A stretch of 64,000 nucleotides of DNA from Bugula neritina (Eukaryota; Animalia; Bryozoa). Positions 8,601-14,600 of this stretch are shown here, piece after piece (positions within the stretch are counted from its first letter, which is position 1; every line of letters starts with the position of its first letter). The stretch is from the NCBI GenBank assembly GCA_964035545.1, contig OZ037766.1:30618773-30682772 (forward strand). The letters are read 5' to 3'. A program made the translations under genes and the position numbers. Under the pieces are notes generated by a model, which did not search any database, was not told the origin of the DNA, and worked only from the letters and a program-made list of their open reading frames with translations.

Positions 8601-11600
8601 CAAACTGGTAGAAGCTAACAGAACCCGTGACATGCTCAACATGTTTTGTTACACTTTGTATCACGTTATCGTAATTCACTGTAAATTAAAATTCAATTAG
8701 TACTGATAGGTTTTTTAAAATGTTACCAATTATTACAAGAATATATTGTTATGTAAAACTAAATTACCGCATTACCATTTAAGTTATTGTCATCTTATTT
8801 CGTAATTTTAATCTCACTCCAATACCATAGAACTATAACAATACTATGTATCGCTAACCAAATATATTATGTCAAGTAAAAATTTGTTGTAGGCCTGTAA
8901 CAAAAATAAAAAGGTTGACATGACATACATCCAGCTGTGAAATATCAATTGCTACATCACAGCATTTGTAATTGCTTTTGCTAATTTTTTTAATTTCTAA
9001 TATTACTAAGTAACACTCTTTATGTTGAAATTTAAAAAATAAAATGAAAGATTTCTTGTTTTTCATCTGAAATAAACGTATGCTAGAAAGTGTTTTTTGT
9101 CATATCAAACTTGATAATTCATCTAAAAACAGAGCGCAAAGCACTACGAAACTTAAACATGCAAGCAAACTGCTATTAGTTAGTATCTAAATTTATAATT
9201 TAAACACAATTTATAGTTTATCATATTATTAATCTAATTTTCAGTCGAAATTTGCATGCTAACAGTTCTCGGTTATTACTATCAGTTCATCAAATGTTTA
9301 CCTAGGTAAAATGGAGACATAATTTCAACATGCAAATTTAACCTAACACCTATTTTATTTTGAGATGCACTAAGTTTAATTTATGCAAAGTTCTATGAAA
9401 TAAAGTTCATTGATTGACCATTTTTTAACTTTTTAACTTTAACCAAAAAACTAGGCCGAACTTTTTATTTGTCTTCTTTAATTACCAGTCTTATGTATGA
9501 GCAAATGTCCTTTGATGTGTGTACAACCAGATGGTAGGGAACGTATAGTTAAAGCTGTCCACTCCACTTGACTAAAGTCACACCACTTCTTGCAAGCTCC
9601 TTCACATTCAACACATCTCCTGTTAACATCTGGTAAATATCCTGCTGGACATTCTGTGGTGCAGGATCCATCAGCATGTTTGAAATATCCAGCTAGAAAG
9701 TTACAGAAAGATTTTGACATTATTCTTATTTGTATTTAAAGCTAAAATATATGTGTGCATGGGTGTGTGCGTGGTGTGTGTGTGTGTGTGCGTGGTGTGT
9801 ACGTGTAAGTGCGTGTTACTATATTTTATAAAGTAAAACAACAACTTCAATAAATTTGACTCATTTGTATATCTATTTGCGTACCAGGGAATGTGGGCAC
9901 ACACAGCCACACATGAATATAAAAACATCACATTAGTTATGTATTATGTATTATAGCTTACTGCTTTGCTCATCGTACTCAAAGAGCTCTATTTCGGTAA
10001 AAATAAACCTCCTATTTGCTTCAGCGTAAATGCCAAACTGAGCTGTGAGAGGATATCTTTCTGTCCCGTCTTCATGTTTGCACGTGATATAAAATACTTT
10101 GTCTTCTGGAGCCTTATTCATTCGAGTACACAACTCCCAACCAGCGTTGTATTCATCCGGCTGAGTGTGAGTGGAAGTTGAATGTGCAGCATTTGTAGTA
10201 GCCACAAATGGCTTGAACACTTGTCTGATAGCTTAAACAAACAACGCAGTTTAATGGTATATTTACACAACTGTGGAATTTAATAATATAATAATGTTTA
10301 TTGTTGATCAAGTTAAATGTGCAAGCAGATGTAGGTCATTTGAATTTAAAATTTTGATTCTTTGATGAACTTCAGTAAGCAGTGGACCTAAAATTTATGT
10401 AAAGTGCACGCAAATTGTTTCAGTTAGCTTGTAGCTCAAAGTTAGTTCATACTCACAGCAAAGTCCTGATCTACACAGTGTAGAGAGATACAGAACTGCA
10501 TGCGATAGTTGTATCAACTTCTGTGAGACTACAACAATAACCCATGACCAGTGAGCTAAATGGTAATCTTTTGATGGAAATACAGGGAAGTCTGTTATTC
10601 CATCTGTTAACTGAGATGAATCTTCCCTACTAAAACCAAGTTCTGAGTCGGTTTGTTGTTGGTATGCATAATTCACACCTCCTGAAACAAACATAGGAAA
10701 TGTTTATGCAAAGTACTTTTAGAGACAGTAGCTGTGTTTAAACTTGAACATGATACATAATTTTTTGAAAGCTAAAGTCAAACAATATTATCTTAAGTGA
10801 AGTAATGCAGCTTCTAATTGCCTTCAGTTTTGTTAAAGATTTATTGAATTTTTATTTCTTTTTTCTAACTTAAAGTAACAAACGCGACTAAAATTTTTAA
10901 ATATTGGCTGCATCAGTAGCACACAAGATGATAGCATTAATTTTAGTAATAGACCCTGTTCAGAGGTCCATGATGTTTTCTTTACAATTAAGAGTTGTCT
11001 CCTCTCAAAGTGAACAGGTTGAACCTTTGTATAAAGAGCAAACTCATTCAAAATTTAAAGTTTAGCAGATACTTAAAACTATAATTATGCTATAGAATTT
11101 TTATTAGGAGATAAATATTTGGGTGTAAGCACAAATATTAGCAGTTCAAAAATAATTAAAAATATTTTTTCATAAATCATTTTGATCGAAATAAACGTGA
11201 AAGCATTTTCGTGGCTCTGGTTACTGAGCAATGCTGAAGCAACACTTCAGCATTGCTCAGCAACCAAACCCACAGAAATGAGTTCAAGTCTGTTTTGCTC
11301 AACACATATTTCATTTTGGGAGACCGCAACTCTTCATTGTAAGGGAGGACATTGAGGACCTCTGGAAAGGATCTATTGAAAACTAATAACCCCAACTTTC
11401 AATAACTCAGAAACATGGACATATTAGCAGGACGTTAAAGTAGCAATATGGAGGTCAATATTAGTTTAAGAAGAACTCACCTATACCAAAAACTTCAACT
11501 TGTCTTAACACCAGACCAGGTGAATCTTTCCCAGCTACGATAATGAACTGTCTAGTTAATCTGTGTGGGTCACCAATGTTGCAGGTTACCAAAGATTTTA

Positions 11601-14600
11601 TTTCAAGTTTATCGCCTTCAAACTTGCAGACTTCTGCGTTGAGAAGGTGAGGAGGCGCACGTTGTAGCCTATCACTACTTAGAGTAGTCAAATAAGTTAC
11701 ATCTTTAAGCGTGTAAGACCCTACAAAATATCAAGAGCAATATAACAAGTTATAGCATCAAACATGGTTTTATTATCATATTAGCACCATTTATAGCATT
11801 TCAATCAGTTTAATATGCTGCATCGCTGCCATCACACTACTGGAATAGATATTTAAACATCGAAACTGTATATTTTTCAATGAATAAATTACTCCATTAG
11901 AGAAATGTTGTATAGTGGCAAATTAGTAATTCAAAACCAAAATAAGGTTTCAAGTTGACTGTGAATTATATCTTATTTTATCTTATGTTATATTATAGTA
12001 TATTATATTATATTATATTATCTTATGTTATATTATAGTATATTATATTGTATTATTTTATATTATATTATATTATATTGCATTGTAGTGTATTATAGTA
12101 TATTATATTATATTATATTATTTTATGTTACGTTACGTTACGTTACGTTGCGTTGCGTTGCGTTGCGTTGCGTTGCGTTGCGTTGCGTTGCGTTGCGTTG
12201 CGTTGCGTTGCGTTGCGTTGCGTTGCGTTGCGTTGCGTTTCGTTATGTTATGTTATGTTACGTTACGTTGCGTTGCGTTGCGTTGCGTTGCGTTGCGTTG
12301 CGTTGCGTTGCGCTGCGCTGCGTTGCATTGCGTTGCGTTGCGCTGCGCTGCGTGGCGCTGCGCTGCGCTGAGCTGCACTACACTACACTACACTATACCA
12401 TACTATACTATACTATACTATACCATACTATACTATACTATACTATACTATACTATACTATACTATACTGTACTGTACTGTACTATACTGTACTGTACTA
12501 TACTATACTATACTACACTATACTACACTATACTACACTATACTATACTATACTGTACTATACTATACTATACTATACAGTACTATACTATACTATACTG
12601 TACTATACTATTTTATACTATACTATACTATACTGTACTATACTGTACTATACTATACTGTACTATACTGTACTGTACTATACTATACTATACTATACTA
12701 TACTATACTATACTATACTATACAGTACTATACTATACTATACTGTACTATACTGTACTATACTATACTATACTATACTATACTATACTATACTATACTG
12801 TACTATACTATACTATACTATACTATACTATACTATACTATACTGTACTATACTATACTATACTATACTATACTGTACTATACTATACTATACTGTACTG
12901 TATTATATTATACTATACTATACTATACTGTATTATATTATATTATACTGTATTATATTTTATTGTATTGTATTATATTTTATTGTATTGTATTATATCA
13001 TATTATGTTGTATTATATTATATTACATTACATTACATTATATTATATTATATTATATTATATTATATAATATTATATTATATTGTATTATATAGGCAAA
13101 TATAAGTCCTACCAGGTAAAGTTAGACACTGCTGTGCATCTCTAGTAGTCCCTCTTTCAACTATAGCATAGTAAAACCTTATATGGGTCCATAAAACAAC
13201 AGACCAAAACCCATAGCTCTCTTCTAATCCAATAAATACATGATTGGGGTTATAGCTGAGAGCATTGTGTGATTGGAAGACTATCCTTTGCCTACCACTT
13301 CTCGAGGAGCACTCACTAGAGGTGTAGCTGTTGGCAGAACGATCCATCCCCTCTGCAAAGTGTATGACAAATTTCTTTAAGACTCTTTGCAATTATGTCT
13401 CTACTAAACAGTGTTATATAACTCTTTTAAGTAAGGTTATTTATACATAATATTTATATTTGCTATAAGGGAGCAGCCGTGGTCTAGGGGTTAGAGCGTT
13501 TGCCTAGTAAACATGAAGGTCATGGGTTCGAGCCCTGACAAAGGTCATTGGTGATGTTAGGAAGAGCATCCAGTCATAATTGCTCCTGTGCCTCATTTAA
13601 ATAAGTCCTTAGCCCTCTTTAACAAAAACCCTTTCTATCAGGAGTTTTTCACAGGGATAGTGACTATAAACTTGCGTGAGTTATTTATATTTGCTATATT
13701 TGTTTTGATCTAAAGTATTTGGCGTACCTGGACATTCTTTTACACAGAACTTGTTCTTTATGCTGTAGTGCTTTTGTTCAACAACTTCATTCAAGACAGG
13801 ATCATAAACTTTCTTTGAAGGAACTTGAGAACAGTTTTCAACGCAAGCACCAGATGGGAATACGTAGGGACCAGAGCAGCCTTCGAACTATGGAGCAATA
13901 GCAGTAATAATTGGATTTTTGTACATTACGCATTTCTATTTCCCTATTCTGTCTATAACGGTGGTTTATCAATGGAAATTGGGCTATTTGTTAGATATTA
14001 TTGTCTATGAACTATAGAAAACAATATATTGTATTTAACCCGCCCCTTCTACCCAAACAATGAAACAGTTTACAGATACAGCCATCTATAACTTTTATGT
14101 ATAATATTCATCCCACTTCTTCATCATAGAGTTATTATTTGCTAACAATAATATACACTTTATGATAAATTAATGTTAAGTACGATGTGAACCTATTTAA
14201 AAGAAAACCAACTAAACACAACTTCCGGCATAGAATCAGACACCTACTCTGAGACAGTCAGCTTCAGTTGGTCCTCTACATCCGGTGAGACAACTCTCAT
14301 GACAACAATGATTTGCTGTGTTATGATAACAGCCAGTAGTACAACTTGGATGACAGTTTGTAAAGTCTATTTGACAGTCTTCTGCATCTGGTCCCCAGCA
14401 GTTGTTTCCCAGACAAGAAGAATGACACTGCCCTACATTTGACAAGTTACAACAACTGCTTTAATTCTTAATATGTTATCAAACTATTAAAGATAAGAGC
14501 AAATATTGTATGATTTGTTTCAAAAACCAACAATATAAATTATTTTATTGGATTGCCCTCCGGATGAGGCTCTGCTAAGTACAATGCTAAGTTCAGTTCT

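Follow-up and report, generated by a model that had tools for sequence, protein, structure and literature searches.

The stretch of DNA analyzed here (hereinafter, the window) comprises 64,000 nucleotides of the genome of the bryozoan Bugula neritina (assembly GCA_964035545.1, contig OZ037766.1, positions 30,618,773 to 30,682,772 of the forward strand) and carries tandem EGFR-like genes, among them the copies denoted A to D. In each of these, the first cysteine-rich domain (CR1, furin-like) is interrupted by four exons (I1 to I4) that probably encode two diverged, tandem discoidin-type domains. Gene A is located on the minus strand, and its exon chain was read from the three minus frames together with the splice sites. 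The first CR1 exon lies within 14239..14460 (the limits of the open stretch, not exact exon ends) and is followed by exon E0 (13887-13728), which encodes CR1 modules with a long Cys-to-Cys hairpin loop and ends with ..KFCVKECP plus one base, that is, in phase 1. Next come the insert exons I1 (13352-13113, 240 nt), I2 (11720-11481, 240 nt), I3 (10681-10457, 225 nt) and I4 (10231-9962, 270 nt), 975 nt or 325 codons altogether, each flanked by an AG acceptor and a GT donor and each with two split-codon bases at the start and one at the end (phase 1-1). I1 and I2 correspond to the predicted N-terminal and C-terminal halves of discoidin-like unit 1, and I3 and I4 to the respective halves of unit 2. 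In exon E5 (9692-9486), which starts with the split-codon T, CR1 resumes and the L2 domain begins.

The introns between E0 and E5 are, in this order, 375, 1392, 799, 225 and 269 bp long. The 1392-bp intron between I1 and I2 of copy A contains about 1.1 kb of pentanucleotide arrays (TATAT, GTTGC, ACTAT and ATATT; 11969-13093), which account for the larger span of the insert in this copy compared with copy B. A preliminary description of this DNA gave the insert as four phase-1 exons of about 325 amino acids at 9962-13352, which is exact to the base, and its statement that CR1 is interrupted in frame at a point where human EGFR is contiguous is supported.

Conservation of the insert exons and the host gene

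In copies B, C and D, tblastn recovers all six exons from E0 to E5 in unchanged order, with 49-83% amino acid identity, no stops and identical splice positions. The four insert exons of these copies, delineated by tblastn and by reading of the splice sites, lie, likewise on the minus strand, at 24946..26786 (B), 36616..39239 (C) and 52434..54844 (D), the very spans previously proposed. Four more genes in which all six exons are open are located just beyond the window, so that the cluster consists of eight genes at C2:30.57-30.68 Mb. The insert exons of the eight paralogs differ at 40-50% of the synonymous sites, yet their frames remain open, and the ratios of non-synonymous to synonymous substitution (dN/dS) are 0.42 for I1, 0.29 for I2, 0.56 for I3 and 0.27 for I4, compared with 0.31 and 0.28 for the CR1 exons on either side of the insert. 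The insert exons are under purifying selection, and their conservation is far above chance. The exons for the N-terminal halves (I1 and I3) evolve faster than the scaffold exons and have also diverged more at synonymous sites; among the scaffold exons, E0 is identical in 86% of the columns over the eight paralogs. Furthermore, a JGI sample of independent origin yields two contigs that contain I3, I4 and E5 in this order and represent two members of the family.

The divergence among the copies is mosaic. The E0 exons of gene B (26911-27075) and gene H (L013:4301-4465) differ at 3% of the synonymous sites, compared with 40-55% for the insert exons of the same two genes, and the nearest-paralog relationships shift from exon to exon across the cluster. 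Gene conversion or recombination among the copies is the likely cause. In I1 of gene H (L013:4629-4865), both cysteines (..SSEC.. and ..QQC..) are replaced together, by Y and F, respectively; this joint replacement suggests that the two cysteines of I1 pair in a single disulfide.

In the host gene itself, the first CR1 exon matches the Pfam Furin-like profile (PF00757) with 33.7 bits (cut-off 26.8), and its best relatives among solved structures are ErbB3, ErbB4 and EGFR (residues 160-225; E-values from 1e-8 to 4e-6). For E5, the best solved relative is IGF1R (residues 269-333, E = 8e-8), ahead of any ErbB chain; this segment covers the final CR modules and the beginning of L2. The other domains give weaker matches or none: the L1 exon of gene A gives a weak match to Recep_L_domain (E = 0.006, under the cut-off), the second cysteine-rich domain a weak match to GF_recep_IV (PF14843; 18.5 bits against a cut-off of 29.5; 5208-5342), and the Cys-rich exon at 7304-7585 has no match in Pfam. 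Downstream (3') of E5, gene A has L2-like exons and a Cys-rich CR2-like region, after which come FN3-like exons, a stalk of Ser/Thr-rich repeats, a membrane span and a repeat-containing tail in which Y..P motifs are found. The Ser/Thr-rich stalk, immediately before the membrane span, is encoded by the open frame at 3496-4245, and the tail exon (3329-2619) closes in a stop, after which the L1 exon of the next gene follows. An L1 exon of another member of the family is located at 76-468 on the minus strand; this gene extends beyond the low-numbered edge of the window and continues in L010. Elsewhere in the window, a 54-bp tandem repeat is present in 15 copies (46943-47770).

None of the kinase motifs HRDxxxxN, DFG, GxGxxG and SDVWS is present in any of the six frames of the 64-kb window. 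Judging from its domain content, the host is a kinase-less member of the EGFR/insulin receptor ectodomain superfamily with an ErbB-like layout; it is not EGFR proper because a kinase motif is missing and E5 is nearest to IGF1R. Thus, the label of EGFR that was initially given to this gene holds only with qualification, the first CR1 exon being nearest to ErbB3/4/EGFR but the exon after the insert to IGF1R. The likeness to the EGFR/ErbB family consists in the order of the L1, CR1, L2 and putative CR2 domains, the long Cys-to-Cys hairpin that precedes ..C.K.CP and the phase-1 intron at the position of the human exon 7/8 junction; the differences are the 325-residue insert of two domains in CR1, the lack of a kinase, the FN3-like exons, Ser/Thr-rich stalk and repeat tail that follow the CR2-like region, and the closer similarity of E5 to IGF1R. 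IGF1R and the insulin receptor, in turn, differ from the host in having a kinase but neither CR2 nor an inserted domain.

Discoidin-like units and the C3 gene family

The unit of comparison throughout was the single exon, for the searches and alignments as well as for the hhalign runs and the tree described below, each insert exon being half a domain. That the insert consists of two units of two exons each, as had been suggested, is borne out by the alignment of I2 with I4 (hhalign E = 0.008 over 61-70 columns), in which both cysteines, the QF.I.A motif and the EVE.(F/Y) ending coincide; the motifs quoted at that time are present in the sequence. In a search of the same genome, a HMMER profile built from I4 and I2 detects the exons for the C-terminal half of a domain denoted Y (YC exons) in a cluster of genes located at 7.1-8.1 Mb on C3, with E-values down to 3e-6 genome-wide. 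Among 1.84 billion representative proteins, the same profile finds only three genomic single-exon fragments of the same family, all from one JGI sample, and three spurious repeat proteins, with no full-length annotated protein among the matches. The I3 profile, when run against the genome, recovers the eight cluster genes only and does not reach the C3 domains.

The C3 genes encode two units, X and Y, each split between two exons, and all four exons are in phase 1-1. The intron inside each unit is located just past the ..C....C motif, the same position as the intron between I3 and I4. Pfam identifies the exons for the N-terminal halves (XN and YN) as F5/8 type C, with 30.1 bits for PF22633 (cut-off 27.8) and E = 2.6e-5 for PF00754, and the C3 units are thus canonical discoidin-type domains. 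In profile-profile comparisons with hhalign, where a second E-value refers to profiles extended by another three divergent members of the family, I4 matches YC with E = 5e-10 (96-97% probability), I2 matches YC with E = 1.6e-6 and then 1e-9 (90-96% probability, 75 columns), I3 matches YN with E = 0.006 (71 columns) and then 1.8e-4 (69 columns), and I1 matches YN with E = 0.005 and then 2e-4. Any comparison of an N-terminal with a C-terminal half yields E = 0.09 or worse. Column-shuffled controls reached the observed score in 0 of 120 cases for I3, 1 of 120 for I1 and 0 of 60 each for I2 and I4. The assignment of the insert to the discoidin (F5/8 type C, galactose-binding-domain-like) group is transitive because it is the N-terminal halves of the C3 domains that match Pfam and the insert exons that match the C3 halves by profile-profile comparison. 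On these grounds, the insert is accepted here as two predicted discoidin (F5/8 type C)-like units of two exons each.

In the maximum-likelihood tree of the C-terminal halves, X is the partner of unit 1 and Y that of unit 2; the support values, 82 and 88, are moderate, and the branches are long. This topology suggests that the two-domain cassette is homologous to the X-Y pair of the C3 genes as a single block. The insert units share with the discoidin families PF00754 and PF22633 and with the X-Y pair a collinear series of motifs, namely N.A..., ..DG, the W.V.L hairpin, C....C and ..C...C..QF.I.A...EVE.(F/Y)G, in addition to the intron position, the phase 1-1 structure and the significant profile-profile matches. 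They differ in being too diverged for detection with Pfam and in being nested within another domain, in contrast to the N-terminal location of the X-Y pair, and they also lack the terminal disulfide of the factor V/VIII C domains. Discoidin-type domains are present in the ectodomains of other single-pass receptors, within the realm of receptor tyrosine kinases, namely DDR1 and DDR2; in these proteins, however, the discoidin domain is N-terminal and not nested in a Cys-rich domain, a kinase is present, and there are no L or furin-like domains.

The C3 genes comprise a tandem family of receptors outside the EGFR-like group (L003, L004-L009 and L015; 7.11-8.09 Mb). The two canonical discoidin-type units come first; next are FN3-like exons and one sushi-like exon, and the membrane span is followed by a tail that contains the ITIM-like motif VTYEIL. 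Some copies contain in-frame stops. The possibility that this family is a diverged EGFR-like subfamily was considered and rejected, given that no EGFR-like exons were found when the surroundings of the C3 genes were searched for them. Adjoining one of the C3 receptor genes is a 527-codon open frame (L015:3666-5246, minus strand) with zinc-knuckle motifs (CX2CX4HX4C) and one protease-like motif, which is apparently a gag-pol-like remnant of a retroelement.

The earlier comparison of the insert to an F-type lectin/F5-8C pattern holds in its discoidin (F5/8 type C) part, through the C3 profiles, but not in its lectin part. F-type lectins bind fucose through the motif HX24RXDX4(R/K), and an adjacent Cys-Cys pair at the binding site is a hallmark of the family (PMC5712786). 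This motif is absent from the exon alignments of the copies in the window, unit 1 included. The C....C segment of I3 reads CRSGLC in A, CNFTDC in B, CQFGPC in C and CSSGYC in D, so that an Arg is present in A only and R-x-D in none, and the His residues of I3 are out of register, lying 1-4 residues before a Trp rather than 25 before an Arg. Adjacent cysteines are found in neither I1 nor I3 of the copies in the window; a ..NCC ending is present in divergent members of the family on C6 and at C2:31.76 Mb. The resemblance to lectins of the eel agglutinin type is thus limited to a general jellyroll-type sequence pattern and the tandem arrangement of domains, which a review describes for the F-type lectin family (PMC5712786), and classification as F-type lectins in the strict sense is not supported for the window's copies, which lack both the fucose motif and the Cys-Cys pair.

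Insertion site and paralogs with an empty site

The Furin-like profile is matched at positions 10-66 by the first CR1 exon and at positions 111-147 (of 147) by E5; therefore, E0 spans the part between. The cysteines of E0 are spaced C-11-C-4-C-29-C-4-C, and once the insert is removed, another 12 residues separate the last of these from the first Cys of E5. This spacing fits the pattern of C227, C236, C240, C267, C271 and C283 in human EGFR. On this reading, the insert would open the small loop equivalent to C271-C283, directly past the C240-C267 hairpin, presumably the dimerization arm. The 29-residue Cys-to-Cys loop lies at the position expected for the arm and is conserved in the paralogs; its identity as the arm is tentatively assigned by position and by the EGFR sequence. 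By analogy with human EGFR, the insert may lie at the surface used for dimerization, as originally proposed.

In human EGFR, the junction of exons 7 and 8 is at residues 273/274, just before NYVVTDH, and the EGFRvIII variant, in which residues 6-273 are missing, has the junction peptide LEEKKGNYVVTDH (PMC10534925). The human junction falls in the same place as the end of E0 (KECP) and the start of E5, that is, at the insertion site. The empty site is retained in two tandem EGFR-like paralogs about 150 kb away (L022:4166-5096 and L023:5031-5866; C2:30.827-30.839 Mb), which have the long hairpin but no insert exons. In L022, ..CLSQCP is followed by A|gtaagt, a 499-bp intron and ag|GT GGT TTT, again in phase 1, and L023 has a short gap similar to this intron, with no insert exons in it. 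No kinase motifs were detected within 40 kb around these two genes. The architecture of EGFR is described as highly similar across metazoans in a survey that reported no such insert (PMC4914847).

The proposal of phase 1-1 exon shuffling thus gains from two sides, the empty-site paralogs and the C3 cassette of identical structure. It is the parsimonious and well supported reading of the sequences that a phase 1-1 cassette was gained by exon shuffling into an ancient phase-1 intron of CR1, because paralogs with an empty site exist, the intron is at the position of the human exon 7/8 junction and a cassette of the same structure is found elsewhere in the genome. The gain presumably occurred in the EGFR-like lineage, and the donor would be a gene of the C3 type or an ancestor shared with it.

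Additional EGFR-like genes with the insert are located on C6 (L018 and L019; 9.41-9.60 Mb) and on C2 (L020 and L021; 31.755-31.783 Mb). These two subfamilies have a hairpin loop of 12 residues, compared with 29 in the cluster. The insert appears to predate both subfamilies because all four insert exons are kept there, and the hairpin appears to be dispensable in some of the subfamilies that carry the insert. On C6, E5-like exons recur approximately every 3.5 kb, which suggests a repeated module within these genes.

Alternative readings and the possible role of the insert

Taken together, the data are probably best explained if I1-I4 are genuine coding exons of an EGFR-like gene that encode two tandem, strongly diverged beta-sandwich domains of the discoidin type, each interrupted internally by an intron whose position corresponds to that in the canonical C3 pair. 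The four-exon phase 1-1 cassette would have entered the CR1 intron equivalent to the human EGFR exon 7/8 intron, and by homology with EGFR, the insert would open a short disulfide-closed loop beside the long hairpin. Both domains could hang from this loop without breaking the CR1 rod, which would still close, because the ends of the discoidin fold lie side by side. The most likely role of the inserted domains is that of putative ligand-recognizing heads of kinase-less, tandemly expanded surface receptors; the variable loops, mostly in the faster-evolving exons of the N-terminal halves, would contact the ligand, which may or may not be a glycan, the conserved hairpin might mediate pairing, and the tail with tyrosine motifs might signal.

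Several results weigh against this explanation. Pfam gives no match to a lectin or discoidin model for the insert exons of gene A taken singly at E-values up to 10 and no match for ten insert exons of divergent members at E-values up to 1; the profiles of the C-terminal and N-terminal halves produce only chance matches to PDB sequences (E > 1); and an ESM Atlas feature search with I4 and I3 returned no usable match. On the side of the C3 family, Pfam does not recognize the exons for the C-terminal halves of the canonical domains, and the link between the N-terminal halves is modest (E-values from 1e-2 to 2e-4). The AlphaFold2 models of half-domains, made from 27-row alignments, are of low confidence (pLDDT of 52 and 45) and display a single beta-hairpin; the prediction of I3 and I4 as two chains, with a score of 0.00, is neither support nor counter-evidence. 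With respect to the insertion site, E0 has no significant match in PDB either alone or as a profile of eight sequences, so that the placement of the disulfide loop and the identity of the arm come from EGFR residue numbering and Cys spacing rather than from a scored alignment of E0. Finally, the splicing of E0-I1-I2-I3-I4-E5 is deduced from conservation alone; in the sole sequencing run found, 81% of the words from a mostly intronic stretch (more than half intron) are present, which makes the run DNA-like and not RNA evidence.

Among the alternatives, a possibility that deserves attention, although the odds are against it, is a role of genuine inserted domains that no longer bind a ligand: they would serve as spacers, sterically block back-to-back pairing of the ErbB type or make protein-protein contacts, for example homophilic ones, instead of contacts with sugar. 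A role other than sugar binding would be compatible with the absence of the fucose-binding triad and motif of F-type lectins and with the hairpin loop of 12 instead of 29 residues in the two inserted subfamilies on C6 and at C2:31.76 Mb, in which hairpin pairing would be dispensable; furthermore, the same fold binds phospholipid, for example in the C2 domain of factor Va (PMC5712786). For an inert spacer, however, the exons of the N-terminal halves evolve too much in the manner of diversifying heads (dN/dS of 0.42-0.56 and higher synonymous divergence), although this is only suggestive.

It is also conceivable, if rather unlikely, that I1-I4 are optional cassette exons, such that isoforms with zero, one or two inserted domains are produced, perhaps with an EGFR-like ectodomain free of the insert as the predominant form. 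All six junctions are in phase 1, so that any skip would stay in frame, and the acceptor of I4 is weak (AAG) in A, B and D. Nevertheless, purifying selection on I2 and I4 equals that on the flanking CR1 exons, the insert exons are kept in all of the inserted paralogs examined (at least 10), and paralogs free of the insert exist as separate genes, which lessens the need for skipping.

Chance resemblance of Cys-containing, beta-rich sequences to discoidin-type domains appears improbable. Such an explanation would accommodate the lack of direct matches in Pfam, PDB and the Atlas as well as the low confidence of the half-domain models, but not profile-profile scores that the shuffle controls fail to reach by a wide margin for the C-terminal halves and that also lie outside these controls for the N-terminal halves, with collinear pairing only, nor the intron position and phase common to the canonical domains and the genome-wide HMMER E-value of 3e-6. 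That the exons are decayed relics or constitute a gene of their own, nested in a long intron of CR1, can be practically dismissed: reading past the donor of I4 in copy A does lead to a stop after three codons, but this stop is not kept in C and D, there is no start codon or signal peptide exon (a Met occurs at the start of I1 in copy A only), all boundaries are AG/GT and agree in phase with E0 and E5, the insert exons keep their order and their place between these two exons in all paralogs, and dN/dS is below 1.

A more elaborate scenario, which we consider speculative and unlikely in its full form, would have the ectodomain rebuilt as a variable recognition receptor, with discoidin-type heads set into the disulfide loop beside the hairpin, in which capture of a ligand by the heads directly gates pairing of the kinase-less receptors through the hairpin and the tail with tyrosine motifs signals. 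Such receptors would have been diversified by tandem duplication and exon-level recombination and could be involved in self/non-self or microbe recognition in a colonial animal.

Newly found here are the precise exon chain with its selection values, the C3 family with the X-Y cassette of the same exon structure, the paralogs with an empty site, the match to human intron 7, the inserted subfamilies with the shortened hairpin loop and the absence of the F-type lectin signature. A single genome thus contains the recipient, the empty site and a likely donor-type cassette, and human EGFR shares the target intron, which makes this an unusually complete example of domain insertion through exon shuffling. 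The apparent ability of the rigid CR1 rod to carry a two-domain insert of 325 residues in a short disulfide-closed loop beside the hairpin bears on the tolerance of this much-studied scaffold and on the origin of new receptor families. To our knowledge, the molecules of immunity and allorecognition in bryozoans are essentially unknown; if the inserted domains are indeed diversifying binding heads, these receptors would be a candidate recognition system for this group of animals.

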